Origin: Tubulanus polymorphus
Taxonomy: Eukaryota; Animalia; Nemertea
Reading direction: 5' to 3'
Assembly: GCF_964204645.1 (NCBI RefSeq)
Contig: NC_134034.1
Span: 1 to 64,000, forward strand
DNA length: 64,000 bases
Shown one piece after another: positions 1 through 35,786 of the stretch. Both the position numbers and the translations under genes were made by a program. Numbering within the stretch: the first letter of the stretch is position 1; every line of letters starts with the position of its first letter. The notes below the pieces were generated by a model. It saw only the letters and a program-made list of their open reading frames with translations. It had not been told where the DNA came from and did not search any database.

Positions 1-1328
1 ACCCTAACCCTAACCCTAACCCTAACCCTAACCCTAACCCTAACCCTAACCCTAACCCTAACCCTAACCCTAACCCTAACCCTAACCCTAACCCTAACCC
101 TAACCCTAACCTAACCCTAACCCTAACCCTAACCCTAACCCTAACCCTAACCCTAACCCTAACCCTAACCTACCCTAACCCTAACCCTAACCCTAACCCT
201 AACCCTAACCCTAACCCTAACCCTAACCCTAACCCTAACCCTAACCCTAACCCTAACCCTAACCCTAACCCTAACCCTAACCCTAACCCTAACCCTAACC
301 CTAACCCTAACCCTAACCCTAACCCTAACCCTAACCCTAACCCTAACCCTAACCCTAACCCTAACCCTAACCCTAACCCTAACCCTAACCCTAACCCTAA
401 CCCTAACCCTAACCCTAACCCTAACCCTAACCCTAACCCTAACCCTAACCCTAACCCTAACCCTAACCCTAACCCTAACCCTAACCCTAACCCTAACCCT
501 AACCCTAACCCTAACCCTAACCCTAACCCTAACCCTAACCCTAACCCTAACCCTAACCCTAACCCTAACCCTAACCCTAACCCTAACCCTAACCCTAACC
601 CTAACCCTAACCCTAACCCTAACCCTAACCCTAACCCTAACCCTAACCCTAACCCTAACCCTAACCCTAACCCTAACCCTAACCCTAACCCTAACCCTAA
701 CCCTAACCCTAACCCTAACCCTAACCCTAACCCTAACCCTAACCCTAACCCTAACCCTAACCCTAACCCTAACCCTAACCCTAACCCTAACCCTAACCCT
801 AACCCTAACCCTAACCCTAACCCTAACCCTAACCCTAACCCTAACCCTAACCCTAACCCTAACCCTAACCCTAACCCTAACCCTAACCCTAACCCTAACC
901 CTAACCCTAACCCTAACCCTAACCCTAACCCTAACCCTAACCCTAACCCTAACCCTAACCCTAACCCTAACCCTAACCCTAACCCTAACCCTAACCCTAA
1001 CCCTAACCCTAACCCTAACCCTAACCCTAACCCTAACCCTAACCCTAACCCTAACCCTAACCCTAACCCTAACCCTAACCCTAACCCTAACCCTAACCCT
1101 AACCCTAACCCTAACCCTAACCCTAACCTAACCCTAACCCTAACCCTAACCCTAACCCTAACCCTAACCCTAACCCTAACCCTAACCCTAACCCTAACCC
1201 TAACCCTAACCCTAACCCTAACCCTAACCCTAACCCTAACCCTAACCCTAACCCTAACCCTAACCCTAACCCTAACCCTAACCCTAACCCTAACCCTAAC
1301 CTTAACCCTAACCCTAACCCTAACCCTA
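1..1328. repeat. Terminal telomeric array (CCCTAA)n, left chromosome end
   Basis: ~220 CCCTAA units from base 1, with a few single-base variants (~110, ~170, ~1123, ~1300). Confidence 0.99.
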
Positions 1329-1420
1329 GGTCGCGCAATTAATTGTGCTGCGGATCGCGTGCATTTTGTTGTGGCTGCGGCAAACGGTTGTTTCTCGGAC
1401 GAGTGGACACGTACGACATC
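1329..1420 (-). mobile_element. Inverted 92-bp fragment of PLE ORF2 (Cys-linker region) capping copy 1
   Basis: Reverse complement of 7330-7421, joined to the pLTR via a duplicated GTACGA. Confidence 0.93.
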
Positions 1421-1768
1421 GTACGACCCGTGCACTAGTGGGGTCTCCAAACCTTCGGTTTGGTCCCCTAACCTCTATCTCTAAACCTAACCTTAGCCCG
1501 TGCCAGGTTTCCCTCGTAAATTATCTTAACTGATTAATTATTAATCATCAATCTTTTTGCAGAATCATCCTCCGTCGCCTGAAGCAGAAACCCGCTCAGA
1601 GACAGAGTACAAAACAAACTCCAAGATCACAAGCTCCACAGGAATCATCAACCTTTTATCTTTTAATTAGTTCTCTCTGCTTTACTTTGAAAACTCAATC
1701 GAAATTCAGTAAGTAAGAAGACAGACCAAATATCAGAAACAGTTAGAAAAATAAACAAAAGCGCGATA

Positions 1769-2320
1769 TCGGGAACCGAACCCTAACCGCTAGTACAGAC
1801 TGGTTGCCTGTCCCAGGACGATAGAAACCGGTAACCAGTCCACCGCTATTATCTATTTCGAAAATATGCGCCAGCACTGAGATTATATCATAGAAACACC
1901 CGAAAAGTATTAATTAATCTATTATAAATTTAGAAAGAAAGGGAATCTAGAATAGGTAAGAATATACTCAATTACTAAAACGGCGCGCCTGATCGGGACT
2001 CGAACCCGCGGCACCCGAATTAAGCTCCGGAGAATACTCGGGAACCGTACCCGCCGCTCCGAAATTAACCGCTAGTACTGACGGGTTGCCGGTGCCCCGC
2101 GTTAGATACCGGTAACCAGTCCACCGCTCTTATTTATTTTGAAAATATGCGTCGGCACTAAGATTATATCGTAGAAACATCTGAAAAGTACTATTGTATC
2201 CGTCAAAGATTCAGAATTAAAAGGAATCCAGAATAGGTAAAAAACATTTAGAATAGAACTATTCAATTACTAAACGGCGCCTGGTCGGGACTCGAACCCG
2301 CGGCACCCTAATTAACCTCC
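1769..2320. repeat. Diverged internal tandem duplication (~270-290 bp x2) in the PLE leader, each copy with a minus-strand Pol III B-box
   Basis: ~1769-2029 aligns with ~2039-2320; GGGACTCGAACCC (reverse complement GGGTTCGAGTCCC) at 1995-2007 and 2287-2299. Confidence 0.8.
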
Positions 2321-3461
2321 GTTTAATCTATAACGTTCGGTCGGGGACCTAACCCGCCACGTCCTAATTAACTATTATCGTATCTACGCGCCAACTCTTG
2401 GAACATACTCTATATAGATCCGGGTGTCAAGTTTCAAATTTCTCTAAAACAGACAGGTTATTTTCGGATAACAATTCTAATGAGATCGCTCAAAAGTATT
2501 AGTAGCTATATTCAAAAACCGCACTATAGGTTGTAGAAGTATAAGAAGTTTATAGGATAAATAATAGTCCACGGACATCAATCACTGTTCACAAGTCACT
2601 CATAATTAGTGACCGATCGGCCACCTGCGCCTCTTGACTAATTATCCGACTCAATTCTATACAAAATCGCAGTTACGACGCCTTCAAACTCATCAGTTTT
2701 TTTCAAAGAACACAGCCCAATATTCCCGATTCTAAAAGAGTTTTATATCACGTATATATTTCAACCTTCGGATTAAAGAAGAGATCATAGTGTTTTTGAA
2801 CCACTCAAACTACGCAAGCTTAAACCGATTTACTGAATACCCGCGCTCCGGTCTGAATATATTTGTCACATATTCAAGTTCACATAGCTTTACTCGATCA
2901 TAATAACTCTAAATAAGCGTAGTTTATCTAATAGAATTATATTTAAGAACTTAGAATTAAAACAGACGTATCAGTAAGACATTTCTATCAAAACTCGTCA
3001 CCCATAATTAGGGCTAATTAACCACCCGCGCTCACTCAGTAATTTAGATCTTACGGGTATAACTTCCTACTAAATCGCCGACGCCGCGCTGTCTAATTCA
3101 TCCAATCTTCGGTAGAATACCGCGTAGATATTTCAAAATCCGCTCTTAAAAGCTTTTGAATACGGAGAAAACTTGATTAACTAAGAACCGGATTTCACCA
3201 TTTACGACTATTTAGTAAACACGCGTATATCGGAATACGCCTCGGCCGCGCACCGCTAATTAACGCGTCTAAACTAATTAGGAATTAAGCAATTTTGAAA
3301 CTGAACTCGGACATATTTCGAACATTCCGGTTCACGTATATTAATAATACATATTCTAGATTTCTCTTTATAGAAAACACTCTGAGTATTTATTAGGTTA
3401 TATCGAAATAAACTTTTCAATTCTATATTAGACACGCCGTTCTTTAGATCTTTAGAACTAT

Positions 3462-3700
3462 ACATCAAAGCAAACTATTCAACAGCTAGATCAAGGGCCA
3501 TAATTAGTGCTGTTTTCTAGTCACTCTGGATCAAAGGCATAATTAGTCAGACCCCTAGTTTGTCTATTAGCTTGATCACAGAAGTACAATTAGTCTAGAT
3601 CACAAGGTCTCATATGGTCACTTAACTTCTCACTCAAATACTGTTCACTTGTTGCGCGCTGCGTGTATAAAAACCCGTGTCTAATCCTAGTTCAGCATGA
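3462..3700 (+). promoter_or_regulatory. Putative PLE Pol II promoter: TATA box (3666-3673), Inr-like TCAGCA, upstream repeated GATCA..AATTAGT modules
   Basis: TATAAAAA ~30 nt upstream of 3694-3698; the 5' end of copy 6 maps to 3698; conserved in copies 2-5. Confidence 0.65.
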
Positions 3701-5253
3701 TTCCTGCACTGACACTGACGAAGGCAACCTCGCCGAAATATCTGTCAATGGAGCGATCTACTCGAAAGAAGAAACGACCACCAGCTGAGAAGACCAGCAA
3801 GGGCGGAGGACGCCCTGAGCGACACCAGCAACCCGGAATGTCGCCGAAAAATTACTATAGAGCTCTTCAAGTGGCGCACCACCTTGCCCAGTTGAGCTCT
3901 GGTCCGAAAGCGATTCGGAGGAAGAAGGACCATCTGAAGATGTTCCTGCGGCCGGCGGCTTGCACCGAAGCAGTAACGGTGCAGCTGCACGCTGCCGCGG
4001 ACGTCTGGATGGAGACAGTTTCGAAAGAGCTGACCATCCATTACGCTGCCACATTTGTTCAGCTAATGGGTGATCCTCTGCCGGACTGTCTATCAGCACA
4101 GGATGTCGCCCTGACATGGGCCCGGAGGAATTTCGGCTCCCGTCTGAGCCCCGGAACGATCCGGCTTTTCAACATCGCGCTGGATTTGCGGTCGAAATTC
4201 CGCGGTCAGGCTCTGTCTGACAAACTCAGAAATGTCCTATCTAACCCACCTTCTTCCCCTTCTCATTTCAGGTCACACCACCAGGAGGCACCACCGGAGC
4301 CGAAGATTCGTCCGCCGCCGAGACCGAGCCGGAAGATTCGAAAGCCCGCGACGCCGAGGACGCCTGCACCAACCGCAGCCGCGCCCGCCGCGCCCACAGC
4401 GCCTCCTTCTTTTTCTGATTCCAGGTCACCGAGAAGCTACGCGGATGTCACCAGGACGCCACCAACCAAAATGGCGCCACCACCGAGAAGTCCGATGCCG
4501 ACGCCGCCGCCGCCACCAAGAAGTCCGACGCCACCGAGAAGTCCGACGCCGCCGCCTCGAAACCCGACGCCGCCGCCGCAGAGAACGCCGACCGCACCAA
4601 CCAGCAGTCCGACGCCGTCTCTCTGTTCTTCTCTTTCCAGCTCTCCGTCTCATTACAGGTCACCAGGGCGCCTACTGCCAGCGCGAAGTCCGACGCCAAC
4701 ACCGAGACCGATGGCGCCCCAGGAAGTTCGCCGTCATCCGAATACGGGTCGGAAGAAACAGGATTGGAGTCTGCCACCAACCCGGCGACCCATTCTGGTG
4801 ATTGGTGACTCAAATCTGAGTAACATCACATCAAGCCGCCGTCCGGATGACGTCCAGATCGAGAGCTTCCCCGGCTGCAAGATAGCTCATCTCGCCGACC
4901 TGATCGATGCTGTACCGGAGCGCCGAGATCGCCCGGACACGGTGATCATCAGCGTCGGAATCAACAACCGCGACAACAACTTCGAAGCGACCGCCAAGAA
5001 GACCACACAGCGCCTGATCAACGCCGCAGTCAAGAAGTATCAGCACTCGTTCGTCCACTTCGTTCAACTCAACACGACCCGCGAACACCAGCAGTTCGCC
5101 CGGAAGTTCAACGAATTCCTCGAGATTCACGACGACGTCACCGCGATACCACCCATCGATGATCGACGCTTCAGAGTTGTTGGAGACGGGATCCACTGGA
5201 ACCGTGGTACAGCTAACACCCTGCTGGACCACTGGCTCAGTGGTTTAAACTAA
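3697..5253 (+). CDS. PLE ORF1: basic N-terminus, Pro-rich RSPTPP linker, C-terminal SGNH/GDSL esterase domain
   Basis: Blocks IGDSN, FPG, VGINN and DGIH; true start may be ATG 3748 (MERSTRKKKR) just after the ribozyme. Confidence 0.9.
   Translation: MIPALTLTKATSPKYLSMERSTRKKKRPPAEKTSKGGGRPERHQQPGMSPKNYYRALQVAHHLAQLSSGPKAIRRKKDHLKMFLRPAACTEAVTVQLHAAADVWMETVSKELTIHYAATFVQLMGDPLPDCLSAQDVALTWARRNFGSRLSPGTIRLFNIALDLRSKFRGQALSDKLRNVLSNPPSSPSHFRSHHQEAPPEPKIRPPPRPSRKIRKPATPRTPAPTAAAPAAPTAPPSFSDSRSPRSYADVTRTPPTKMAPPPRSPMPTPPPPPRSPTPPRSPTPPPRNPTPPPQRTPTAPTSSPTPSLCSSLSSSPSHYRSPGRLLPARSPTPTPRPMAPQEVRRHPNTGRKKQDWSLPPTRRPILVIGDSNLSNITSSRRPDDVQIESFPGCKIAHLADLIDAVPERRDRPDTVIISVGINNRDNNFEATAKKTTQRLINAAVKKYQHSFVHFVQLNTTREHQQFARKFNEFLEIHDDVTAIPPIDDRRFRVVGDGIHWNRGTANTLLDHWLSGLN
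3710..3747 (+). ncRNA. Minimal type I hammerhead ribozyme (copy 1)
   Basis: Stem I TGACA/TGTCA, core CTGACGA(A), stem II GGC-AACCTC-GCC, GAAA, palindromic ATAT in place of stem III, predicted cut after ATC at 3742; typical PLE minimal hammerhead. Confidence 0.88.
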
Positions 5254-5285
5254 GTATTAGTGAGACCAACGGGTCCACTATTGGT
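5244..5285 (+). promoter_or_regulatory. Putative -1 programmed ribosomal frameshift signal joining ORF1 to ORF2
   Basis: T_TTA_AAC immediately before the ORF1 stop, 7-nt spacer, stem TAGTG(A)GACC/GGTCCACTA; the -1 frame is open from 5217 into the RT. Confidence 0.82.
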
Positions 5286-5408
5286 GAGTTAAATCAACCG
5301 GAATTAACCAATGCTTCTCTGATTTCTTCCATTTCCAGGTCCGACGAACACGAAGAACCGGCACCGAACCAAGCGCGACGCGATCCGGTCACCGCTCTCG
5401 GGAGCCCG

Positions 5409-7709
5409 GTGGTCAACCTCACACGTTCACTCCGCCTAAGTCCGGCGCAACATCAGCTACTCCGAAAGGGCCTCACTTATTGCCCGACTCCAAAAATCGG
5501 TTCTGATGCCGCCGCGACCGAGCGCACCAAGGGAGTGTGCCGATTCAACCGGCTAGTGAAACTCGACCATCACTTCCGTGACAAACCGGACCGCGAGGCT
5601 CCGCGTTTCCGTCTGCCCAGCAGTTGGGCTCCGGATGAAATAGAACCAGTAATCGCCGGGTTCTGCAACGACGCGCACGAATTGGCTCAACAAACCAGGG
5701 ATACGCGTCGCGTAAATGATAACCTCACTAAACAGGAACGCGAAGCCCTCCAGCAGCTGCGTGACAACACTAATATTGTCATCAAAGCCGCCGATAAGGG
5801 TTCCGCTACGGTTATCATGGACCGCGACGACTACGTCCACGAAGCCATGCGCCAACTAGCCGATCTCGAGTATTATCAGCCGCTGCAGCAACCGATCTTC
5901 GAACAGACCGGGGAAGAAATTCGCGAAATCATCGAAAATATGGCTCGACGAAAAATCATCCCGCTAAAAACCGCCGAATATCTATTACCGCCCGATAATC
6001 CGAAACAGAGGCAGTTCTATCTGCTTCCCAAAATCCATAAAGAACGCGAGAAGTGGACGGTACCCGATCGCGTACCGCCGGGGAGACCGATCGTCTCCGA
6101 CTGCGGCTCCGAAACCTACGAAATTTCGGAATGGATCGACTACTATTTGCAGCCGATCGCCCGCGGTCACCCGTCGTACGTCAAAGATACCAACCACTTT
6201 CTAGATATTTTGGCCGGTAAACAATTTAGCGCCGATGCGTTACTCGTCACCATGGACATCGATTCGCTCTACACCAACATCCCCCACGAAGAGGGTATCG
6301 CCAGCATCCGACAAGCTCTCCGAGATAACCCGAACCCGGGACGCCCGGATGCCGAGCTGCTGAAACTACTCGAAATCAGCCTGAAGAAAAATGACTTTAA
6401 CTTTAACGAAAACACATATTTACAGGTAAAAGGTACCGCAATGGGTAAGCGTTTTGCTCCTTCTTATGCCAATATCTTTGTAGCCGAATGGGAAAAAGAA
6501 GGTCTGTCCAGAAGCGAACTCCAACCATCGCTATACGCTCGGTTCATCGACGACATCTACGTAGTTTGGGAACACGGCCGCGAAACGTTGATGCAATTCA
6601 TCGACGTCCTACAAACAGTGAGCCGATCCATCAAACTCAAGTTCGAAATCAGCGACACCAGCGTCAACTTCCTGGACGTAACCACTTTCAAAGGCCCGCG
6701 ATTCGAGACAAGTGGCACAGTAGACACCAAAGTCTACTTCAAACCAACCGATTCGCATCAATTACTACATCGATCCTCGTTTCACCCTAAACACACATTT
6801 TCCGGTATAGTTAAAAGTCAAATTCTCCGGTTCCGGCGCATCTGCAATAACGATTCGGACTTACACGCAGCGTCCGGAACCGTCCTTAAAGTACTCAGAG
6901 GTCGTGGCTACAAAGACCGCGAACTGCGACACATCAAAAGCCAAGCTCTACGGCACCACGCCGAACGAGATCTACGAGAACAACAACGGGCCGACGAAGC
7001 GCCGAAAAAGCGTTTACCGCTTATCTTACCTCACTCCGAAGCCAACCGAACCCTAGCCCGTAACATCCGAACCAGATTTACGGAACTGGCTACGGCCACC
7101 GGCCGGTCTGACGAGGTAACCACGGTCACCGCCTACACCAAGCACAAGAGTCTCAAAGATCTCCTAACTTCGTCGCAGCTCAAACCCACGGAGCCACCCC
7201 CTCCCCGAGTCCCCTCTTCACCGCATCGTAACAGAAATACTTCCGTTGTTTCCAATTCTTCTATTTCCAGGTCTACTCAAAGAACTCCGTCAACCCGACG
7301 TCGAGGCACCGAGAAATGCAGAACACCGAGATGTCGTACGTGTCCACTCGTCCGAGAAACAACCGTTTGCCGCAGCCACAACAAAATGCACGCGATCCGC
7401 AGCACAATTAATTGCGCGACCCGTGAAATTGTATACTGCATCGAATGCACCAAGTGCAACATGCTGTACGTCGGCCAAACCGGAATGTCTCTACGAGAAC
7501 GCGTCACTCATCACGTCTCACGCATCAGAACGAAGAATTCGACTCCAGTCTCGGACCACTTCAACCAAGTCGACCACACCCGCGAACACTTTCGGGTGTA
7601 CGGTCTCCAACACCTACCAGGCTCCACGAGACCGATCCGCGAAGCAGCCGAACAAGACTGGATACGACGACTCGACACGAACACGCCCCGAGGCATGAAC
7701 GTCCCGTAG
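5409..7709 (+). CDS. PLE ORF2: reverse transcriptase + Cys linker + GIY-YIG endonuclease (no AUG at its start; frame open from 5217)
   Basis: ADKG, DIDSLYTNI, GTAMG, RFIDD, FLDV; CxxxxCxxC linker; IVY..C..C..YVGQT..R..H..H..E..N. Confidence 0.97.
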   Translation: MVNLTRSLRLSPAQHQLLRKGLTYCPTPKIGSDAAATERTKGVCRFNRLVKLDHHFRDKPDREAPRFRLPSSWAPDEIEPVIAGFCNDAHELAQQTRDTRRVNDNLTKQEREALQQLRDNTNIVIKAADKGSATVIMDRDDYVHEAMRQLADLEYYQPLQQPIFEQTGEEIREIIENMARRKIIPLKTAEYLLPPDNPKQRQFYLLPKIHKEREKWTVPDRVPPGRPIVSDCGSETYEISEWIDYYLQPIARGHPSYVKDTNHFLDILAGKQFSADALLVTMDIDSLYTNIPHEEGIASIRQALRDNPNPGRPDAELLKLLEISLKKNDFNFNENTYLQVKGTAMGKRFAPSYANIFVAEWEKEGLSRSELQPSLYARFIDDIYVVWEHGRETLMQFIDVLQTVSRSIKLKFEISDTSVNFLDVTTFKGPRFETSGTVDTKVYFKPTDSHQLLHRSSFHPKHTFSGIVKSQILRFRRICNNDSDLHAASGTVLKVLRGRGYKDRELRHIKSQALRHHAERDLREQQRADEAPKKRLPLILPHSEANRTLARNIRTRFTELATATGRSDEVTTVTAYTKHKSLKDLLTSSQLKPTEPPPPRVPSSPHRNRNTSVVSNSSISRSTQRTPSTRRRGTEKCRTPRCRTCPLVRETTVCRSHNKMHAIRSTINCATREIVYCIECTKCNMLYVGQTGMSLRERVTHHVSRIRTKNSTPVSDHFNQVDHTREHFRVYGLQHLPGSTRPIREAAEQDWIRRLDTNTPRGMNVP

Positions 7710-8650
7710 ACCGCCTCACTACAACAATTAACTCTCACTACTTTTTTACAGGGATAACCCGCTGCCCGTGCACTAGTGGGGTCTCCAAACCTTCGGTTTG
7801 GTCCCCCAACCTCTATCTCTAAACCTAACCCTAACCCTAACCCTACTCGATCCTAATAACTCTAAATAAGCGTAGTTTATCTAATAGAATTATATTTAAG
7901 AACTTAGAATTAAAACAGACGTATTAGTAAGACATTTCTATCAAAACTCGTCACCCATAATTAGGGCTAATTAACCACCCGCGCTCACTCAGTAATTTAG
8001 ATCTTACGGGTTATAACTTCCTACTAAATCGCCGACGCCGCGCTGTCTAATTCATCCAATTTTCGGTAGAATACCGCGTAGATATTTCAAAATCCGCTCT
8101 TAAAAGCTTTAGAATACGGAGAAAACTTGATTAACTAAGAACCGGATTTCACCATTTACGACTATTTAGTAAACACGCGTTTATCGGAATACGCCTCGGC
8201 CGCGCACCGCTAATTAACGCGCCTAAACTAATTAGGAATTAAGCAATTTTGAAACTGAACTCGGACATATTTCGAACATTCCGGTTCACGTATATTAATA
8301 ATACATATTCTAGATTTCTCTTTATAGAAAACACTTTGAGTATTTATTAGGTTATATCGAAATAAACTTTTCAATTCTATATTAGACACGCCGTTCTTTA
8401 GATCTTTAGAACTATACATCAAAGCAAACTATTCAACAGCTAGATCAAGGGCCATAATTAGTGCTGTTTTCTAGTCACTCTGGATCAAAGGCATAATTAG
8501 TCAGACCCCTAGTTTGTCTATTAGCTTGATCACAGAAGTACAATTAGTCTAGATCACAAGGTCTCATATGGTCACTTAACTTCTAACTCGAATACTGTTC
8601 ACTTGTTGCGCGCTGCGTGTATAAAAACCCGTGTCTAATCCTAGTTCAGC

Positions 8651-10207
8651 ATGATTCCTGCACTGACACTGACGAAGGCAACCTCGCCGAAATATCTGTC
8701 AATGGAGCGATCTACTCGAAAGAAGAAACGACCACCAGCTGAGAAGACCAGCAAGGGCGGAGGACGCCCTGAGCGACACCAGCAACCCGGGATGTCGCCG
8801 AAAAATTACTATAGAGCTCTTCAAGTGGCGCACCACCTTGCCCAGTTGAGCTCTGGTCCGAAAGCGATTCGGAGGAAGAAGGACCATCTGAAGATGTTCC
8901 TGCGGCCGGCGGCTTGCACCGAAGCAGTAACGGTGCAGCTGCACGCTGCCGCGGACGTCTGGATGGAGACAGTTTCGAAAGAGCTGACCATCCATTACGC
9001 TGCCACATTTGTTCAGCTAATGGGTGATCCTCTGCCGGACTGTCTATCAGCACAGGATGTCGCCCTGACATGGGCCCGGAGGAATTTCGGCTCCCGTCTG
9101 AGCCCCGGAACGATCCGGCTTTTCAACATCGCGCTGGATTTGCGGTCGAAATTCCGCGGTCAGGCTCTGTCTGACAAACTCAGAAATGTCCTATCTAACC
9201 CACCTTCTTCCCCTTCTCATTTCAGGTCACACCACCAGGAGGCACCCACGGAACCGAAGATTCGTCCGCCGCCGAGACCGAGCCGGAAGATTCGAAAGCC
9301 CGCGACGCCGAGGACGCCTGCACCAACCGCAGCCGCGCCCGCCGCGCCCACAGCGCCTCCTTCTTTTTCTGATTCCAGGTCACCGAGAAGCTACGCGGAT
9401 GTCACCAGGACGCCACCAACCAGAATGGCGCCACCACCGAGAAGTCCGATGCCGACGCCGCCGCCGCCACCAAGAAGTCCGACGCCACCGAGAAGTCCGA
9501 CGCCGCCGCCTCGAAACCCGACGCCGCCGCCGCAGAGAACGCCGACCGCACCAACCAGCAGTCCGACGCCGTCTCTCTCTTCTTCTCTTTCCAGCTCTCC
9601 GTCTCATTACAGGTCACCAGGGCGCCTACTGCCAGCGCGAAGTCCGACGCCAACACCGAGACCGATGGCGCCCCAGGAAGTTCGCCGTCATCCGAATACG
9701 GGTCGGAAGAAACAGGATTGGAGTCTGCCACCAACCCGGCGACCCATTCTGGTGATTGGTGACTCAAATCTGAGTAACATCACATCAAGCCGCCGTCCGG
9801 ATGACGTCCAGATCGAGAGCTTCCCCGGCTGCAAGATAGCTCATCTCGCCGACCTGATCGATGCTGTACCGGAGCGCCGAGATCGCCCGGATACGGTGAT
9901 CATCAGCGTCGGAATCAACAACCGCGACAACAACTTCGAAGCGACCGCCAGGAAGACCACACAGCGCCTGATCAACGCCGCAGTCAAGAAGTATCAGCAC
10001 TCGTTCGTCCACTTCGTTCAACTCAACACGACCCGCGAACACCAGCAGTTCGCCCGGAAGTTCAACGAATTCCTCGAGATTCACGACGACGTCACCGCGA
10101 TACCACCCATCGATGATCGACGCTTCAGAGTTGTTGGAGACGGGATCCACTGGAACCGTGGTACAGCTAACACCCTGCTGGACCACTGGCTCAGTGGTTT
10201 AAACTAA
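8651..10207 (+). CDS. PLE ORF1 (SGNH esterase), copy 2
   Basis: Near-identical to 3697-5253. Confidence 0.88.
   Translation: MIPALTLTKATSPKYLSMERSTRKKKRPPAEKTSKGGGRPERHQQPGMSPKNYYRALQVAHHLAQLSSGPKAIRRKKDHLKMFLRPAACTEAVTVQLHAAADVWMETVSKELTIHYAATFVQLMGDPLPDCLSAQDVALTWARRNFGSRLSPGTIRLFNIALDLRSKFRGQALSDKLRNVLSNPPSSPSHFRSHHQEAPTEPKIRPPPRPSRKIRKPATPRTPAPTAAAPAAPTAPPSFSDSRSPRSYADVTRTPPTRMAPPPRSPMPTPPPPPRSPTPPRSPTPPPRNPTPPPQRTPTAPTSSPTPSLSSSLSSSPSHYRSPGRLLPARSPTPTPRPMAPQEVRRHPNTGRKKQDWSLPPTRRPILVIGDSNLSNITSSRRPDDVQIESFPGCKIAHLADLIDAVPERRDRPDTVIISVGINNRDNNFEATARKTTQRLINAAVKKYQHSFVHFVQLNTTREHQQFARKFNEFLEIHDDVTAIPPIDDRRFRVVGDGIHWNRGTANTLLDHWLSGLN
8664..8701 (+). ncRNA. Hammerhead ribozyme, copy 2
   Basis: Identical to 3710-3747. 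Confidence 0.85.
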
Positions 10208-10401
10208 GTATTAGTGAGACCAACGGGTCCACTATTGGTGAGTTAAATCAACCGGAATTAACCAATGCTTCTCTGATTTCTTCCATTTCCAGGTCCGACG
10301 AACACGAAGAACCGGCACCAAACCAAGCGCGACGCGATCCGGTCACCGCTCTCGGGAGCCCGGTGGTCAACCTCACACGTTCACTCCGCCTAACCCTAAC
10401 C

Positions 10402-13400
10402 CTGGTAGAGCAGTCGTCCGGCAAACGAAAGGTCCGTGGTTCGAGTCCCGGTCTAGGTGGTGGACTGTGCTTTTCCCGATGCCCCTAACTCTAATGCCTT
10501 CCGACAGGTGGGAGTTAGCCTGATTTCCCGCTGCCCGTGCTCTAGTGGGGAACTGAAAAAGAAATTAATTAATACATCTCGATTAACAGTCTCGGGGGTT
10601 AATCTGAAGAACACACTTGTCATATAATTAATATTCAAATTCAAAAATTGGTTCCCCTAACCTCTATCTCTATACCTAACCTCAGCCTGTGCCAGGAATG
10701 AAGGAATGCGAGGTCACAGGAAATGACAGTCGTCGGTCTGCCCAGGTAGCTCAACTGGTAGAGCAGTCGTCCGGCAAACGAAAGGTCCGTGGTTCGAGTC
10801 CCGGTCTAGGTGGTGGACTGTGCTTTTCCCGATGCCCCTAACTCTAATGCCTTCCGACAGGTGGGAGTTAGCCTGATTTCCCGCTGCCCGTGCTCTAGTG
10901 GGGAACTGAAAAAGAAATTAATTAATACATCTCGATTAACAGTCTCGGGGGTTAATCTGAAGAACACACTTGTCATATAATTAATATTCAAATTCAAAAA
11001 TTGGTTCCCCTAACCTCTATCTCTATACCTAACCTCAGCCTGTGCCAGGAATGAAGGAATGCGAGGTCACAGGAAATGACAGTCGTCGGTCTGCCCAGGT
11101 AGCTCAACTGGTAGAGCAGTCGTCCGGCAAACGAAAGGTCCGTGGTTCGAGTCCCGGTCTAGGTGGTGGACTGTGCTTTTCCCGATGCCCCTAACTCTAA
11201 TGCCTTCCGACAGGTGGGAGTTAGCCTGATTTCCCGCTGCCCGTGCTCTAGTGGGGAACTGAAAAAGAAATTAATTAATACATCTCGATTAACAGTCTCG
11301 GGGGTTAATCTGAAGAACACACTTGTCATATAATTAATATTCAAATTCAAAAATTGGTTCCCCTAACCTCTATCTCTATACCTAACCTCAGCCTGTGCCA
11401 GGAATGAAGGAATGCGAGGTCACAGGAAATGACAGTCGTCGGTCTGCCCAGGTAGCTCAACTGGTAGAGCAGTCGTCCGGCAAACGAAAGGTCCGTGGTT
11501 CGAGTCCCGGTCTAGGTGGTGGACTGTGCTTTTCCCGATGCCCCTAACTCTAATGCCTTCCGACAGGTGGGAGTTAGCCTGATTTCCCGCTGCCCGTGCT
11601 CTAGTGGGGAACTGAAAAAGAAATTAATTAATACATCTCGATTAACAGTCTCGGGGGTTAATCTGAAGAACACACTTGTCATATAATTAATATTCAAATT
11701 CAAAAATTGGTTCCCCTAACCTCTATCTCTATACCTAACCTCAGCCTGTGCCAGGAATGAAGGAATGCGAGGTCACAGGAAATGACAGTCGTCGGTCTGC
11801 CCAGGTAGCTCAACTGGTAGAGCAGTCGTCCGGCAAACGAAAGGTCCGTGGTTCGAGTCCCGGTCTAGGTGGTGGACTGTGCTTTTCCCGATGCCCCTAA
11901 CTCTAATGCCTTCCGACAGGTGGGAGTTAGCCTGATTTCCCGCTGCCCGTGCTCTAGTGGGGAACTGAAAAAGAAATTAATTAATACATCTCGATTAACA
12001 GTCTCGGGGGTTAATCTGAAGAACACACTTGTCATATAATTAATATTCAAATTCAAAAATTGGTTCCCCTAACCTCTATCTCTATACCTAACCTCAGCCT
12101 GTGCCAGGAATGAAGGAATGCGAGGTCACAGGAAATGACAGTCGTCGGTCTGCCCAGGTAGCTCAACTGGTAGAGCAGTCGTCCGGCAAACGAAAGGTCC
12201 GTGGTTCGAGTCCCGGTCTAGGTGGTGGACTGTGCTTTTCCCGATGCCCCTAACTCTAATGCCTTCCGACAGGTGGGAGTTAGCCTGATTTCCCGCTGCC
12301 CGTGCTCTAGTGGGGAACTGAAAAAGAAATTAATTAATACATCTCGATTAACAGTCTCGGGGGTTAATCTGAAGAACACACTTGTCATATAATTAATATT
12401 CAAATTCAAAAATTGGTTCCCCTAACCTCTATCTCTATACCTAACCTCAGCCTGTGCCAGGAATGAAGGAATGCGAGGTCACAGGAAATGACAGTCGTCG
12501 GTCTGCCCAGGTAGCTCAACTGGTAGAGCAGTCGTCCGGCAAACGAAAGGTCCGTGGTTCGAGTCCCGGTCTAGGTGGTGGACTGTGCTTTTCCCGATGC
12601 CCCTAACTCTAATGCCTTCCGACAGGTGGGAGTTAGCCTGATTTCCCGCTGCCCGTGCTCTAGTGGGGAACTGAAAAAGAAATTAATTAATACATCTCGA
12701 TTAACAGTCTCGGGGGTTAATCTGAAGAACACACTTGTCATATAATTAATATTCAAATTCAAAAATTGGTTCCCCTAACCTCTATCTCTATACCTAACCT
12801 CAGCCTGTGCCAGGAATGAAGGAATGCGAGGTCACAGGAAATGACAGTCGTCGGTCTGCCCAGGTAGCTCAACTGGTAGAGCAGTCGTCCGGCAAACGAA
12901 AGGTCCGTGGTTCGAGTCCCGGTCTAGGTGGTGGACTGTGCTTTTCCCGATGCCCCTAACTCTAATGCCTTCCGACAGGTGGGAGTTAGCCTGATTTCCC
13001 GCTGCCCGTGCTCTAGTGGGGAACTGAAAAAGAAATTAATTAATACATCTCGATTAACAGTCTCGGGGGTTAATCTGAAGAACACACTTGTCATATAATT
13101 AATATTCAAATTCAAAAATTGGTTCCCCTAACCTCTATCTCTATACCTAACCTCAGCCTGTGCCAGGAATGAAGGAATGCGAGGTCACAGGAAATGACAG
13201 TCGTCGGTCTGCCCAGGTAGCTCAACTGGTAGAGCAGTCGTCCGGCAAACGAAAGGTCCGTGGTTCGAGTCCCGGTCTAGGTGGTGGACTGTGCTTTTCC
13301 CGATGCCCCTAACTCTAATGCCTTCCGACAGGTGGGAGTTAGCCTGATTTCCCGCTGCCCGTGCTCTAGTGGGGAACTGAAAAAGAAATTAATTAATACA

Positions 13401-15976
13401 TCTCGATTAACAGTCTCGGGGGTTAATCTGAAGAACACACTTGTCATATAATTAATATTCAAATTCAAAAATTGGTTCCCCTAACCTCTATCTCTATACC
13501 TAACCTCAGCCTGTGCCAGGAATGAAGGAATGCGAGGTCACAGGAAATGACAGTCGTCGGTCTGCCCAGGTAGCTCAACTGGTAGAGCAGTCGTCCGGCA
13601 AACGAAAGGTCCGTGGTTCGAGTCCCGGTCTAGGTGGTGGACTGTGCTTTTCCCGATGCCCCTAACTCTAATGCCTTCCGACAGGTGGGAGTTAGCCTGA
13701 TTTCCCGCTGCCCGTGCTCTAGTGGGGAACTGAAAAAGAAATTAATTAATACATCTCGATTAACAGTCTCGGGGGTTAATCTGAAGAACACACTTGTCAT
13801 ATAATTAATATTCAAATTCAAAAATTGGTTCCCCTAACCTCTATCTCTATACCTAACCTCAGCCTGTGCCAGGAATGAAGGAATGCGAGGTCACAGGAAA
13901 TGACAGTCGTCGGTCTGCCCAGGTAGCTCAACTGGTAGAGCAGTCGTCCGGCAAACGAAAGGTCCGTGGTTCGAGTCCCGGTCTAGGTGGTGGACTGTGC
14001 TTTTCCCGATGCCCCTAACTCTAATGCCTTCCGACAGGTGGGAGTTAGCCTGATTTCCCGCTGCCCGTGCTCTAGTGGGGAACTGAAAAAGAAATTAATT
14101 AATACATCTCGATTAACAGTCTCGGGGGTTAATCTGAAGAACACACTTGTCATATAATTAATATTCAAATTCAAAAATTGGTTCCCCTAACCTCTATCTC
14201 TATACCTAACCTCAGCCTGTGCCAGGAATGAAGGAATGCGAGGTCACAGGAAATGACAGTCGTCGGTCTGCCCAGGTAGCTCAACTGGTAGAGCAGTCGT
14301 CCGGCAAACGAAAGGTCCGTGGTTCGAGTCCCGGTCTAGGTGGTGGACTGTGCTTTTCCCGATGCCCCTAACTCTAATGCCTTCCGACAGGTGGGAGTTA
14401 GCCTGATTTCCCGCTGCCCGTGCTCTAGTGGGGAACTGAAAAAGAAATTAATTAATACATCTCGATTAACAGTCTCGGGGGTTAATCTGAAGAACACACT
14501 TGTCATATAATTAATATTCAAATTCAAAAATTGGTTCCCCTAACCTCTATCTCTATACCTAACCTCAGCCTGTGCCAGGAATGAAGGAATGCGAGGTCAC
14601 AGGAAATGACAGTCGTCGGTCTGCCCAGGTAGCTCAACTGGTAGAGCAGTCGTCCGGCAAACGAAAGGTCCGTGGTTCGAGTCCCGGTCTAGGTGGTGGA
14701 CTGTGCTTTTCCCGATGCCCCTAACTCTAATGCCTTCCGACAGGTGGGAGTTAGCCTGATTTCCCGCTGCCCGTGCTCTAGTGGGGAACTGAAAAAGAAA
14801 TTAATTAATACATCTCGATTAACAGTCTCGGGGGTTAATCTGAAGAACACACTTGTCATATAATTAATATTCAAATTCAAAAATTGGTTCCCCTAACCTC
14901 TATCTCTATACCTAACCTCAGCCTGTGCCAGGAATGAAGGAATGCGAGGTCACAGGAAATGACAGTCGTCGGTCTGCCCAGGTAGCTCAACTGGTAGAGC
15001 AGTCGTCCGGCAAACGAAAGGTCCGTGGTTCGAGTCCCGGTCTAGGTGGTGGACTGTGCTTTTCCCGATGCCCCTAACTCTAATGCCTTCCGACAGGTGG
15101 GAGTTAGCCTGATTTCCCGCTGCCCGTGCTCTAGTGGGGAACTGAAAAAGAAATTAATTAATACATCTCGATTAACAGTCTCGGGGGTTAATCTGAAGAA
15201 CACACTTGTCATATAATTAATATTCAAATTCAAAAATTGGTTCCCCTAACCTCTATCTCTATACCTAACCTCAGCCTGTGCCAGGAATGAAGGAATGCGA
15301 GGTCACAGGAAATGACAGTCGTCGGTCTGCCCAGGTAGCTCAACTGGTAGAGCAGTCGTCCGGCAAACGAAAGGTCCGTGGTTCGAGTCCCGGTCTAGGT
15401 GGTGGACTGTGCTTTTCCCGATGCCCCTAACTCTAATGCCTTCCGACAGGTGGGAGTTAGCCTGATTTCCCGCTGCCCGTGCTCTAGTGGGGAACTGAAA
15501 AAGAAATTAATTAATACATCTCGATTAACAGTCTCGGGGGTTAATCTGAAGAACACACTTGTCATATAATTAATATTCAAATTCAAAAATTGGTTCCCCT
15601 AACCTCTATCTCTATACCTAACCTCAGCCTGTGCCAGGAATGAAGGAATGCGAGGTCACAGGAAATGACAGTCGTCGGTCTGCCCAGGTAGCTCAACTGG
15701 TAGAGCAGTCGTCCGGCAAACGAAAGGTCCGTGGTTCGAGTCCCGGTCTAGGTGGTGGACTGTGCTTTTCCCGATGCCCCTAACTCTAATGCCTTCCGAC
15801 AGGTGGGAGTTAGCCTGATTTCCCGCTGCCCGTGCTCTAGTGGGGAACTGAAAAAGAAATTAATTAATACATCTCGATTAACAGTCTCGGGGGTTAATCT
15901 GAAGAACACACTTGTCATATAATTAATATTCAAATTCAAAAATTGGTTCCCCTAACCTCTATCTCTATACCTAACC
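10402..15976 (+). mobile_element. Tandem array (~15.8 x 353 bp) of tRNA-headed non-autonomous element, family A
   Basis: Exact 353-bp period; A/B boxes; 3' module shared with the PLE; telomeric repeats only at the two array ends. Confidence 0.9.
10740..10812 (+). ncRNA. tRNA-derived head of family A unit (recurs every 353 bp); not a canonical tRNA
   Basis: A box TAGCTCAACTGG, B box GGTTCGAGTCC, D-stem GCTC/GAGC, anticodon stem TCGT/ACGA with loop CCGGCAA lacking U33; mismatched T-stem. Confidence 0.82.
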
Positions 15977-16081: not shown

Positions 16082-16736
16082 GCGGAGATATAGAGGTGAA
16101 ACCGAGAGCAATCGTCGGTCCGCCCAGGTAGCTCAATCGGTAGAGCAGTCGTCCGGCAAACGAAAGGTCCGGTGTTCGAGTCCCGGTCTAGGTGGTGGAT
16201 TGCTTTTCGGTATCCCTAACTCTAATACCTTCCGGCAGGTGGAGTTAGCCGGCTTTCCCGCTGCCAGTGTCACAGTGGGGTTCTGAAAAGATATCAGTTA
16301 ATTACTCTCGATTAATTGTGGTGGGTTAATCTGAAGAACACAAAAACATTAATTGATACTCTGATTGGTTCCCCTAACCTATACCTCTAAACCTAACCCC
16401 GACCAGTGCCAGGAAAGTGCGGAGATATAGAGGTGAAACCGAGAGCAATCGTCGGTCCGCCCAGGTAGCTCAATCGGTAGAGCAGTCGTCCGGCAAACGA
16501 AAGGTCCGGTGTTCGAGTCCCGGTCTAGGTGGTGGATTGCTTTTCGGTATCCCTAACTCTAATACCTTCCGGCAGGTGGAGTTAGCCGGCTTTCCCGCTG
16601 CCAGTGTCACAGTGGGGTTCTGAAAAGATATCAGTTAATTACTCTCGATTAATTGTGGTGGGTTAATCTGAAGAACACAAAAACATTAATTGATACTCTG
16701 ATTGGTTCCCCTAACCTATACCTCTAAACCTAACCC
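16082..16736 (+). mobile_element. Tandem (~1.9 x 337 bp) tRNA-headed non-autonomous element, family B
   Basis: Period 337 (16082/16419); tRNA-like heads at 16122-16194 and 16459-16531; diverged relative of family A with the same 3' module. Confidence 0.88.
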
Positions 16737-16768: not shown

Positions 16769-17573
16769 CTCGATCCTAATAACTCTAAATAAGCGTAGTT
16801 TATCTAATAGAATTATATTTAAGAACTTAGAATTAAAACAGACGTATTAGTAAGACATTTCTATCAAAACTCGTCACCCATAATTAGGGCTAATTAACCA
16901 CCCGCGCTCACTCAGTAATTTAGATCTTACGGGTTATAACTTCCTACTAAATCGCCGACGCCGCGCTGTCTAATTCATCCAATTTTCGGTAGAATACCGC
17001 GTAGATATTTCAAAATCCGCTCTTAAAAGCTTTAGAATACGGAGAAAACTTGATTAACTAAGAACCGGATTTCACCATTTACGACTATTTAGTATACACG
17101 CGTATATCGGAATACGCCTCGGCCGCGCACCGCTAATTAACGCATCTAAACTAATTAGGAATTAAGCAATTTTGAAACTGAACTCGGACATATTTCGAAC
17201 ATTCCGGTTCACGTATATTAATAATACATATTCTAGATTTCTCTTTATAGCAAACACTTTGAGTATTTATCAGGTTATATCGAAATAAACTTTTCAATTC
17301 TATATTAGACACGCCGTTCTTTAGATCTTTAGAACTATACATCAAAGCAAACTATTCAACAGCTAGATCAAGGGCCATAATTAGTGCTGTTTTCTAGTCA
17401 CTCTGGATCAAAGGCATAATTAGTCAGACCCCTAGTTTGTCTATTAGCTTGATCACAGAAGTACAATTAGTCTAGATCACAAGGTCTCATATGGTCACTT
17501 AACTTCTAACTCGAATACTGTTCACTTGTTGCGCGCTGCGTGTATAAAAACCCGTGTCTAATCCTAGTTCAGC

Positions 17574-19139
17574 ATGATTCCTGCACTGACACTGACGAAG
17601 GCAACCTCGCCGAAATATCTGTCAATGGAGCGATCTACTCGAAAGAAGAAACGACCACCAGCTGAGAAGACCAGCAAGGGCGGAGGACGCCCTGAGCGAC
17701 ACCAGCAACCCGGGATGTCGCCGAAAACGTATTATAGAGCTCTTCAAGTGGCGCACCACCTTGCCCAGTTGAGCTCTGGTCCGAAAGCGATTCGGAGGAA
17801 GAAGGACCATCTGAAGATGTTCCTGCGGCCGGCGGCTTGCACCGAAGCAGTAACGGTGCAGCTGCACGCTGCCGCGGACGTCTGGATGGAGACAGTTTCG
17901 AAAGAGCTGACCATCCATTACGCTGCCACATTTGTTGAGCTAATGGGTGATCCTCTGCCGGACTGTCTATCAGCACAGGATGTCGCCCTGACATGGGCCC
18001 GGAGGAATTTCGGCTCCCGTCTGAGCCCCGGAACGATCCGGCTTTTCAACATCGCGCTGGATTTGCGGTCGAAATTCCGCGGTCAGGCTCTGTCTGACAA
18101 ACTCAGAAATGTCCTATCTAACCCACCTTCTTCCCCTTCTCATTTCAGGTCACACCACCAGGAGGCACCCACGGAGCCGAAGATTCGTCCGCCGCCGAGA
18201 CCGAGCCGGAAGATTCGAAAGCCCGCGACGCCGAGGACGCCTGCACCAACCGCAGCCGCGCCCGCCGCGCCCACAGCGCCTCCTTCTTTTTCTGATTCCA
18301 GGTCACCGAGAAGCTACGCGGATGTCACCAGGACGCCACCAACCAGAATGGCGCCACCACCGAGAAGCCCGATGCCGACGCCGCCGCCGCCGCCGCCACC
18401 AAGAAGTCCGACGCCACCGAGAAGTCCGACGCCGCCGCCTCGAAACCCGACGCCGCCGCCGCCGCAGAGAACGCCGACCGCACCAACCAGCAGTCCGACG
18501 CCGTCTCTCTCTTCTTCTCTTTCCAGCTCTCCGTCTCATTACAGGTCACCAGGGCGCCTACTGCCAGCGCGAAGTCCGACGCCAACACCGAGACCGATGG
18601 CGCCCCAGGAAGTTCGCCGTCATCCGAAGACGGGTCGGAAGAAACAGGATTGGAGTCTGCCACCAACCCGGCGACCCATTCTGGTGATTGGTGACTCAAA
18701 TCTGAGTAACATCACATCAAGCCGCCGTCCGGATGACGTCCAGATCGAGAGCTTCCCCGGCTGCAAGATAGCTCATCTCGCCGACCTGATCGATGCTGTA
18801 CCGGAGCGCCGAGATCGCCCGGATACGGTGATCATCAGCGTCGGAATCAACAACCGCGACAACAACTTCGAAGCGACCGCCAGGAAGACCACACAGCGCC
18901 TGATCAACGCCGCAGTCAAGAAGTATCAGCACTCGTTCGTCCACTTCGTTCAACTCAACACGACCCGCGAACACCAGCAGTTCGCCCGGAAGTTCAACGA
19001 ATTCCTCGAGATTCACGACGACGTCACCGCGATACCACCCATCGATGATCGACGCTTCAGAGTTGTTGGAGACGGGATCCACTGGAACCGTGGTACAGCT
19101 AACACCCTGCTGGACCACTGGCTCAGTGGTTTAAATTAA
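17574..19139 (+). CDS. PLE ORF1 (SGNH esterase), copy 3
   Basis: 521 aa with in-frame Pro expansions; hammerhead at 17587-17624; slippery T_TTA_AAT at 19130-19136. Confidence 0.88.
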   Translation: MIPALTLTKATSPKYLSMERSTRKKKRPPAEKTSKGGGRPERHQQPGMSPKTYYRALQVAHHLAQLSSGPKAIRRKKDHLKMFLRPAACTEAVTVQLHAAADVWMETVSKELTIHYAATFVELMGDPLPDCLSAQDVALTWARRNFGSRLSPGTIRLFNIALDLRSKFRGQALSDKLRNVLSNPPSSPSHFRSHHQEAPTEPKIRPPPRPSRKIRKPATPRTPAPTAAAPAAPTAPPSFSDSRSPRSYADVTRTPPTRMAPPPRSPMPTPPPPPPPRSPTPPRSPTPPPRNPTPPPPQRTPTAPTSSPTPSLSSSLSSSPSHYRSPGRLLPARSPTPTPRPMAPQEVRRHPKTGRKKQDWSLPPTRRPILVIGDSNLSNITSSRRPDDVQIESFPGCKIAHLADLIDAVPERRDRPDTVIISVGINNRDNNFEATARKTTQRLINAAVKKYQHSFVHFVQLNTTREHQQFARKFNEFLEIHDDVTAIPPIDDRRFRVVGDGIHWNRGTANTLLDHWLSGLN

Positions 19140-19294
19140 GTATTAGTGAGACCAACGGGCCCACTATTGGTGAGTTAAATCAACCGGAATTAACCAATGC
19201 TTCTCTGATTTCTTCCATTTCCAGGTCCGACGAACACGAAGAACCGGCACCGAACCAAGCGCGACGCGATCCGGTCACCGCTCTCGGGAGCCCG

Positions 19295-21595: not shown

Positions 21596-22530
21596 ACCGC
21601 CTCACTACAACAATTAACTCTCACTACTTTTTTACAGGGATAACCCGCTGCCCGTGCACTAGTGGGGTCTCCAAACCTTCGGTTTGGTCCCCTAACCTCT
21701 ATCTCTAAACCTAACCCTAACCCTACTCGATCCTAATAACTCTAAATAAGCGTAGTTTATCTAATAGAATTATATTTAAGAACTTAGAATTAAAACAGAC
21801 GTATTAGTAAGACATTTCTATCAAAACTCGTCACCCATAATTAGGGCTAATTAACCACCCGCGCTCACTCAGTAATTTAGATCTTACGGGTTATAACTTC
21901 CTACTAAATCGCCGACGCCGCGCTGTCTAATTCATCCAATTTTCGGTAGAATACCGCGTAGATATTTCAAAATCCGCTCTTAAAAGCTTTAGAATACGGA
22001 GAAAACTTGATTAACTAAGAACCGGATTTCACCATTTACGACTATTTAGTATACACGCGTATATCGGAATACGCCTCGGCCGCGCACCGCTAATTAACGC
22101 ATCTAAACTAATTAGGAATTAAGCAATTTTGAAACTGAACTCGGACATATTTCGAACATTCCGGTTCACGTATATTAATAATACATATTCTAGATTTCTC
22201 TTTATAGCAAACACTTTGAGTATTTATCAGGTTATATCGAAATAAACTTTTCAATTCTATATTAGACACGCCGTTCTTTAGATCTTTAGAACTATACATC
22301 AAAGCAAACTATTCAACAGCTAGATCAAGGGCCATAATTAGTGCTGTTTTCTAGTCACTCTGGATCAAAGGCATAATTAGTCAGACCCCTAGTTTGTCTA
22401 TTAGCTTGATCACAGAAGTACAATTAGTCTAGATCACAAGGTCTCATATGGTCACTTAACTTCTAACTCGAATACTGTTCACTTGTTGCGCGCTGCGTGT
22501 ATAAAAACCCGTGTCTAATCCTAGTTCAGC

Positions 22531-24096: not shown

Positions 24097-24251
24097 GTAT
24101 TAGTGAGACCAACGGGCCCACTATTGGTGAGTTAAATCAACCGGAATTAACCAATGCTTCTCTGATTTCTTCCATTTCCAGGTCCGACGAACACGAAGAA
24201 CCGGCACCGAACCAAGCGCGACGCGATCCGGTCACCGCTCTCGGGAGCCCG

Positions 24252-26552: not shown

Positions 26553-27493
26553 ACCGCCTCACTACAACAATTAACTCTCACTACTTTTTTACAGGGATAA
26601 CCCGCTGCCCGTGCACTAGTGGGGTCTCCAAACCTTCGGTTTGGTCCCCCAACCTCTATCTCTAAACCTAACCCTAACCCTAACCCTACTCGATCCTAAT
26701 AACTCTAAATAAGCGTAGTTTATCTAATAGAATTATATTTAAGAACTTAGAATTAAAACAGACGTATTAGTAAGACATTTCTATCAAAACTCGTCACCCA
26801 TAATTAGGGCTAATTAACCACCCGCGCTCACTCAGTAATTTAGATCTTACGGGTTATAACTTCCTACTAAATCGCCGACGCCGCGCTGTCTAATTCATCC
26901 AATTTTCGGTAGAATACCGCGTAGATATTTCAAAATCCGCTCTTAAAAGCTTTAGAATACGGAGAAAACTTGATTAACTAAGAACCGGATTTCACCATTT
27001 ACGACTATTTAGTAAACACGCGTTTATCGGAATACGCCTCGGCCGCGCACCGCTAATTAACGCGCCTAAACTAATTAGGAATTAAGCAATTTTGAAACTG
27101 AACTCGGACATATTTCGAACATTCCGGTTCACGTATATTAATAATACATATTCTAGATTTCTCTTTATAGAAAACACTTTGAGTATTTATTAGGTTATAT
27201 CGAAATAAACTTTTCAATTCTATATTAGACACGCCGTTCTTTAGATCTTTAGAACTATACATCAAAGCAAACTATTCAACAGCTAGATCAAGGGCCATAA
27301 TTAGTGCTGTTTTCTAGTCACTCTGGATCAAAGGCATAATTAGTCAGACCCCTAGTTTGTCTATTAGCTTGATCACAGAAGTACAATTAGTCTAGATCAC
27401 AAGGTCTCATATGGTCACTTAACTTCTAACTCGAATACTGTTCACTTGTTGCGCGCTGCGTGTATAAAAACCCGTGTCTAATCCTAGTTCAGC

Positions 27494-35772: not shown

Positions 35773-35786
35773 CTAACCCTAACCCT

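Follow-up and report, generated by a model that had tools for sequence, protein, structure and literature searches.

The telomeric Penelope-like elements (PLEs) of the Athena/Coprina and Terminon groups, reportedly described by Gladyshev and Arkhipova in 2007 and by Arkhipova et al. in 2017, are among the closest known counterparts of the elements analysed here. The reverse transcriptases of PLEs form a sister group to TERT and are the closest relatives of telomerase. A hammerhead in the pseudo-LTR is typical of the canonical PLE clades but absent from Naiad and most Chlamys elements. To our knowledge, neither the recognition of PLE RNA nor the priming of its reverse transcription has ever been shown biochemically.

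In published accounts, Athena/Coprina and Terminons are endonuclease-less PLEs that attach to telomeres through 3′ reverse-complement repeats located beside a hammerhead, and reverse transcription from the true RNA 3′ end has been proposed for the hammerhead-processed Athena and Terminon RNAs (PMC8557442, PMC6431247). Short dependants of PLEs have been described as well: non-autonomous Chlamys elements of the MRC1 type have 3′ ends in common with their partners and insert head to tail (PMC8557442), and the non-LTR retrozymes of animals were proposed to be PLE derivatives (bioRxiv 10.64898/2026.07.22.740005). The literature already contains both 3′ ends complementary to telomeres (Athena, Coprina, Terminons) and non-autonomous elements that share their 3′ ends with a PLE partner. 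What is new here is a host element that bears an endonuclease and has no detectable hammerhead, a conserved and structured module that is not a ribozyme, and passengers that carry tRNA-like sequences.

Results

A chain of PLEs and non-coding arrays at a chromosome end

The window, i.e. the whole stretch of DNA that was analysed, is the 64,000-nt left end of contig C10 of the 268-Mb Tubulanus polymorphus assembly. The outermost part of the chromosome end is a (CCCTAA)n array (1–1328), followed inwards by a chain of plus-strand elements separated by spacers of 15–112 nt of CCCTAA repeat. A long PLE copy (1329–7823) is the outermost of these elements, succeeded by a PLE copy ending within ORF2 (7846–10388), an array of 15.8 identical 353-bp units of family A (10404–15969, the span being also given as 10402–15976), 1.9 units of the 337-bp family B (16082–16728), four further PLE copies reaching 35765, a fragment of family A, and finally a decayed repeat tract that extends to about 36190. 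The subtelomeric DNA beyond it (36200–64000) contains many unrelated minisatellites of 20–36 bp and 92–126 bp, and G-rich units with TTAGGG-like words on the plus strand are located at 46406–47045.

The long copy carries ORF2 (5409–7709, plus strand), an open frame of 766 aa in which both a reverse transcriptase (RT) and a GIY-YIG endonuclease domain are present (Pfam RVT_1, E = 1.5e-7; GIY-YIG, E = 3.3e-4), and its product is presumed to be the enzyme that acts on the module described below. It is 96% identical to an annotated protein of the palaeonemertean T. polymorphus, and its homologues contain DUF8422, RVT_1, HTH_animal and GIY-YIG domains. Relatives from marine metagenomes share the same two-ORF layout, their ORF1 giving a weak match to GDSL lipases. 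The element combines the features by which PLEs are recognized, namely RT with GIY-YIG, a partial tandem (pseudo-LTR) arrangement and an inverted 5′ copy, the last represented in the long outermost copy by an inverted duplicate of 7330–7421 (92 bp) at 1329–1420, upstream of a copy of the module. At other sites in the genome, the PLE forms tandem arrays with a period of ~6.35 kb.

Some of the copies in the window are nearly identical. The adjacent copies c3 and c4 (16769–26666) differ at one of 4941 aligned positions, as do c2 and c5 (7846–10388 versus 26689–31620) at one of 2543, which is consistent with several units having derived from one RNA population or one event. Four PLE copies in the window start at the same base, equivalent to position 2893, and a copy on contig C32 starts 25 nt upstream of it. 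The region 2868–2893 is probably where transcription starts, in which case the 4.93-kb copies would be promoter-less. The upstream region of the long copy contains two repeats of ~250 bp (1784–2029 and 2066–2321) that are 80% alike and give weak antisense tRNA-like matches on the minus strand (1985–2057 and 2231–2319).

Anatomy and folding of the 3′ module

The 73-nt module (7758–7830, plus strand), the sequence of which reads as an earlier, preliminary description had given it, opens with a conserved 5′ box, CCCGCTGCCCGTGCAC (7758–7773), likely to be the recognition site of the RT. From this box through GGGG (7758–7781, 24 nt), 22 of the 24 positions match family A, and the same stretch recurs in family B and in L031, a Logan contig considered further below. 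The box is followed by a stem closed by GGGG (7778–7781) and CCCC (7803–7806), with a 7-bp hairpin (7785–7801) inside it, and then by a 28-nt tail entirely devoid of G (7803–7830), which consists of decayed CCCTAA-like units, agrees with perfect in-phase repeats at 19 of its 28 positions, and is present in every DNA copy. The final CCTAACC (7824–7830) is the sole perfect telomere heptamer of the tail and the 3′ boundary of every retrotransposed copy, and it is the likely site at which the primer anneals and synthesis starts. Between it and the next, more internal copy lie 15 nt of perfect repeats (7831–7845), giving a tract of 22 nt with CCTAACC included.

The module also occurs in its native context, with element sequence continuing past the heptamer. 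In the long outermost copy it occupies 1427–1507 (tail 1465–1492, native 15 nt 1493–1507) and is without CCCGCTG, because the cDNA changed strand there. In family A it lies, for one of the identical units, at 10880–11049 (box to tail 10880–11034, native 15 nt 11035–11049), and in family B at 16257–16413 (box to tail 16257–16398, native 15 nt 16399–16413), in both cases on the plus strand. The same box and tail are found in every A unit and every B unit, bearing out the claim that all three families share this module. As a correction to the preliminary description, the likeness between the PLE and families A and B also reaches upstream of 7758, to an AACTCT and then an ACAGG box in the 3′ UTR (7728–7757), which precede the module in A and B too and align with the 3′ UTRs of the relatives L031, L033 and L069. 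Beyond the module, BLAST detects no similarity between the PLE and A or B, the tail alone yielding an E-value of about 1e-8.

Downstream, the similarity among the native continuations of all three families stops exactly 15 nt past CCTAACC, at GCCAGG, and the sequences diverge completely thereafter. Within these 15 nt, 11, 10 and 9 positions in the PLE, A and B, respectively, could pair with the G strand if wobble is counted, which is no more than suggestive of a decayed in-phase telomere tract, with shuffling yielding p-values of 0.02–0.10.

The GGGG/CCCC closure belongs to the minimum-energy fold in all four families available for structural comparison (PLE, A, B and L031), is lengthened by AAC(C)/(G)GTT in A and L031, and the 73-nt module folds with a z-score of −2.27. 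An insert of ~110 nt takes the place of the hairpin at the top of the stem in families A and B. The preliminary description had instead paired CCCGCTG with TAGTGGG. In the PLE, A and B, this helix comes close to the GGGG/CCCC closure in stability, and in L031, where its register is shifted, it displays one compensatory pair (C:G to U:A) along with one broken pair. However, it uses the same G residues as the closure that fits all four families, so we rate it as possible but unproven. The paired change formerly seen in two CCNGTG motifs proved inconsistent, the two positions being C/C in the PLE, C/T in A and A/A in B; with C and T at the two positions of family A, it is ruled out as covariation. 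A long-range interaction of the tail with the upstream UTR was also considered (shuffle p = 0.02 in the PLE, 0.09 in A and 0.06 in B, absent in L031) and is treated as unproven.

3′ junctions and the start of cDNA synthesis

In agreement with the preliminary description, all eight intact 3′ junctions in the window (just before 7824, 15970, 16729, 21710, 26667, 31621, 35766 and 36018) turn to CCCTAA repeats at CCTAACC. They do share this boundary, but as evidence they are not fully independent, given the near identity within the pairs c3/c4 and c2/c5. A ninth junction (10381–10403, plus strand) belongs to the 3′-truncated PLE copy and breaks between 10388 and 10389 at an internal CCTAA of ORF2, which shows that an internal telomere-like pentamer can serve as a start for cDNA synthesis.

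Searching the whole genome for the 28-nt tail with at most three mismatches returned 237 matches, as opposed to none for the reversed control. Among the 97 distinct sites that we inspected, 50 continue into the native sequence, 10 are followed by 30 nt of repeats or more, and the remaining 37 show 0–15 nt of repeat before other DNA begins. The boundary lies at CCTAACC and nowhere else in 47 of the 47 non-native cases, and the native 15 nt joined to foreign DNA, a combination that would mark the RNA end, was not found among the inspected sites. The element has also inserted at many internal sites, frequently within decayed telomere-like tracts, which suggests that, besides attaching to chromosome ends, the element may target telomere-like repeats by means of its endonuclease.

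The same boundary is also found beside non-telomeric flanks where only 0–2 nt could pair (on C11/C9, C32 and C6, and for family B on C4). One such junction is common to 13 copies, located at 11 sites on C11 and two on C9 (L043–L053, L055 and L056). These 13 copies represent one old PLE insertion, 94% identical to the copies in the window and with the same 3′ flank; those on C11 are partly ~80 kb apart, suggesting a large duplicated segment or a carrier repeat. Complementarity alone, which had been held to define the priming site, does not account for a boundary that persists beside such flanks, and the module itself, rather than base pairing only, must fix the start. The proposal that the TTAGGG strand pairs with four units of the tail is not upheld either. 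Where a primer covers the RNA, the resulting DNA would show perfect repeats, whereas every copy keeps the decay; the decayed units are therefore copied template, and at most CCTAACC and the sequence 3′ of it could be paired.

A boundary this constant, even where pairing is limited to 0–2 nt, might also arise if the RNA were cut or terminated just after CCUAACC, by a ribozyme that escaped detection or by a host nuclease, with RT then starting at the true RNA 3′ end and the native array junctions reflecting uncut RNAs. In the published precedent, telomere-complementary repeats do adjoin a hammerhead (PMC8557442, PMC6431247). We nevertheless give this explanation a minor, albeit appreciable, chance. 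At the gathering threshold, Rfam returned tRNA-like matches and no ribozyme in the entire window, and the same outcome was obtained at E-values up to 10 for 1320–3720, 10400–11110 and 3640–3820, regions that include the native module and family A; hence, the hammerhead of the canonical pseudo-LTR is not detected here. A scan of 1–37000 with our own hammerhead descriptor was likewise empty, no conserved sequence follows the module past the 15 nt, and the read-through copies and long arrays would demand many uncut modules. In the stretch 3697–3753, Rfam gave no hammerhead up to E = 10, and helix II fails to close beside the core in our scan; a dimeric, minimal hammerhead of the PLE type is still conceivable there.

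We favour instead a start that is internal to the RNA, a plausible part of the preliminary description that survives the loss of the four-unit pairing. At least some templates probably extend past CCTAACC, as suggested by three features of the DNA copies: the outermost copy (1329–7823) reads through its upstream module into the inverted piece, arrays whose internal junctions are native nevertheless finish with CCTAACC plus repeats, and the similarity between families runs 15 nt beyond the heptamer. If the RNA continues past the heptamer, the start must be internal, and the copy that began at the internal CCTAA of ORF2 also favours such a start, with the limit that most telomeric junctions would look identical had priming occurred anywhere in a read-through repeat tail. 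Four public sequencing runs contain the element, none of them on record as RNA, in the form of contigs whose depth ratios resemble DNA copy numbers.

That limit leads to another explanation, in which the junction is mostly inherited: active source copies would already carry perfect CCCTAA repeats past CCTAACC, transcripts would run into these, the G strand would anneal anywhere in this tail, and the module would serve solely as a binding site, with nothing special about CCTAACC. Priming anywhere in a perfect tail would leave the same product as a start at CCTAACC, copies next to each other scarcely differ, and the tracts past CCTAACC cluster at 3, 9 and 15 nt, mostly ending in CCCTA. Even so, each of the three families must have changed from native to telomeric sequence at least once precisely at CCTAACC, several independent insertions have just 0–1 nt of repeat after it, and arrays with native internal junctions finish there all the same, which makes an inherited junction unlikely in our view.

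The repeat tracts that follow CCTAACC (7831–7845, 21717–21725, 26674–26688 and 35773–35787 in the window, and others at loci on C2, C4 and C32) are quantised in length, with 15 nt in six cases, 9 nt in two and 3 nt in two. Three of the six junctions with a 15-nt tract lie outside the window, beside non-repeat DNA, a satellite-like repeat and a truncated PLE copy. Ten of 16 tracts end in CTA, compared with about 2.7 expected by chance, and whole tract lengths in the window equal 3 or 4 modulo 6. Such quantisation fits either the addition of six-base units by telomerase to a new 3′ end or an RNA tail that stops at a fixed point. It could also be imagined that the module is a telomerase-like internal template, from which the PLE RT, anchored by box and stem, would start at a fixed RNA position whatever the primer, and might itself add the 3-, 9- and 15-nt tracts to any DNA 3′ end. 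We regard this as decidedly unlikely; if true, the element would represent a living link between target-primed retrotransposition and telomerase.

In two PLE insertions (L059, C6:11275010; L064, C2:14601934), CCTAACC is immediately followed by a 27-nt sequence, ACTAGTCCCCTATTCTTGAATCTTACC, the last 16 nt of which also come after an insertion of family B (L025, C4:9664902); the DNA beyond differs in each case. This 27-mer has about 100 dispersed copies in the genome, sometimes as inverted pairs, and may represent either the 30–40-bp 'tail' described for PLEs (PMC8557442) or the end of a separate repeat.

Families A and B

Every unit of family A contains a tRNA-like fold (Rfam tRNA model, 47 bits). 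In both A and B this fold is internal to the unit and is not called by ARAGORN, and it is followed within about 12 nt by TTTT (10813–10830 and each A/B unit), like the terminator of a real tRNA gene, which makes Pol III transcription of the whole unit look unlikely. As in PLEs, the units of both families form head-to-tail arrays. Arrays with the same 3′ boundary are found at the start of both C8 and C9, close to the ends of both C7 and C10, on C16 and at one internal site.

Based on the arrangement of these copies, the best reading of A and B is that of non-autonomous elements which use the PLE enzyme and would be mobilised in trans. Alternatively, they might be satellites of the subtelomeres that took up a piece of a PLE and were spread when chromosome ends recombined, with the module being a mere relic of common descent. 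Tandem units that are 100% identical and arrays situated mostly at or close to contig ends would suit satellites. We consider this origin highly improbable, however, since the 5′ truncation points differ between ends, each capped by repeats, yet the 3′ boundary is shared; since the PLE-like sequence in A and B is confined to the 3′-UTR boxes, the module and the following 15 nt; and since the internal insertion of B (L025 on C4) adjoins an inverted 5′ piece, a hallmark of PLEs. The same boundary at several ends and at an internal site, together with these PLE hallmarks, argues for the preliminary proposal that A and B exploit the PLE RT through the module.

Conservation in other genomes

The ORF2 of L031 shares 61% protein identity with that of the window, and L031 comes from a different genome, as its best DNA match in the present one is only 69–73%. 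Its 3′ UTR is otherwise hard to align, yet the 5′ box is present, with T and A at two positions, as are a GGGG...CCCC stem whose interior differs and a G-free tail of 29 nt. The middle units of this tail retain their decay, and its terminal CCTAACC is joined directly to CCCTAA repeats. Retention of the module at this distance supports the view that it is under selection. A second protein search, started from the relative P0002, did not find closer kin, so that the analysis of covariation rests on the four families.

In the more distant L033 and L069, a related box lies 50–51 nt past the stop codon, compared with 48 nt here (shuffle p about 0.02). These are marine-metagenome relatives with a GDSL ORF1 and an RT-endonuclease (L033, 4543–4799; L069, 3795–4007), and their 3′ ends run into (TAC)n. 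The 3′ end shared by L034/L035 (L034, 4513–4800) consists of decayed CCCTAA units ending in AAGCCGTGG, followed by perfect repeats, and AAGCCGTGG of L034 resembles GCCCGTGCC of the native 15 nt described above. Taken as a series, these ends suggest a fixed recognition box combined with a tail matched to the target repeat of each lineage, which fits the insertion bias of PLEs towards microsatellites (PMC8557442). Scans of metagenomes with the box-plus-stem pattern gave no match, and those with the tail pattern gave a single unrelated plant-type repeat.

Discussion

From the sequence comparisons, we propose that 7758–7830 is the 3′-terminal recognition and priming module of an endonuclease-bearing PLE that targets TTAGGG repeats, and that families A and B are its tRNA-bearing, non-coding derivatives, copied in trans. 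We put the probability of this reading at roughly 55%. In the proposed mechanism, RT would bind the conserved 5′ box and the GGGG/CCCC-closed stem, and the 3′ end of a G strand, provided by the chromosome terminus or by a nick or break in telomere-like DNA, would settle on CCUAACC, the one perfect heptamer, and on whatever repeats come after it. Synthesis of cDNA would begin there and proceed through the decayed, G-free tail, the stem and the remaining RNA, and the RNAs of families A and B would be copied in trans in the same manner, forming head-to-tail arrays.

Should this hold, telomere attachment through a complementary 3′ tail would not be restricted to endonuclease-less PLEs and would not need a hammerhead, and PLEs could support tRNA-bearing, SINE-like passengers. 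The module is used by three young, nearly identical families and is conserved in a second genome. As a compact, natural RNA signal, in which a box and a stem precede a G-free tail containing a single perfect heptamer, it would be a practical substrate for a first in vitro study of PLE priming.

The locus resembles Athena/Coprina and Terminons, as summarised in PMC8557442 and PMC6431247, in its head-to-tail, mostly 5′-truncated chains at chromosome ends with short telomere tracts between the copies, and in having reverse-complement telomeric repeats after a folded 3′ element, which are thought to anneal to G-rich overhangs; GDSL esterase ORFs are likewise shared with Terminons. Those elements lack an endonuclease, whereas an intact GIY-YIG domain is present here, and their repeats adjoin a hammerhead, while here a different stem occupies this place and no hammerhead is detectable. 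A conserved, decayed tail with a single perfect heptamer, insertions at internal sites, and a nemertean host with TTAGGG repeats further set the present element apart from them.

Among short companions of PLEs, families A and B resemble the MRC1-type elements and retrozymes, being short and non-coding, similar to an autonomous PLE at the 3′ end or pLTR, and organized in multicopy head-to-tail arrays. They differ from both by their tRNA-like fold, the absence of a canonical hammerhead, a defined 3′ module, and attachment via telomere repeats. The tandem 170–400-bp units of non-LTR retrozymes would accommodate the 353 and 337 bp of A and B, but the hammerhead in each retrozyme unit is missing here; retrozyme units are, moreover, expressed as circular RNA.

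Another parallel is offered by stringent LINE/SINE pairs such as UnaL2/UnaSINE1 of the eel, and by the telomere-specific LINEs SART1/TRAS1 of Bombyx, in which the partner enzyme recognizes a 3′ stem-loop and RT starts in a short terminal repeat even if the RNA continues, with pairing to the target refining the start. Here, too, a shared 3′ stem-loop and repeat tail would be read by the enzyme of the partner, although that enzyme is a PLE RT with a GIY-YIG nuclease. The priming assumed for an inherited junction would in turn resemble that of repeat-tailed LINEs. Like tRNA-derived SINEs with a tail taken from their partner, A and B possess a 3′ tail homologous to that of the PLE, but in contrast to a classic SINE head, their tRNA-like part is internal to the unit and followed by TTTT.

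The likeness to the template region of telomerase RNA, drawn in the preliminary description, is of geometry only. In both cases, a helix stands immediately 5′ of a C-rich, telomere-complementary single strand. In telomerase RNA the helix bounds a short template that is copied reiteratively; here it sets no such boundary, because all copies continue through the stem and on into the entire element.
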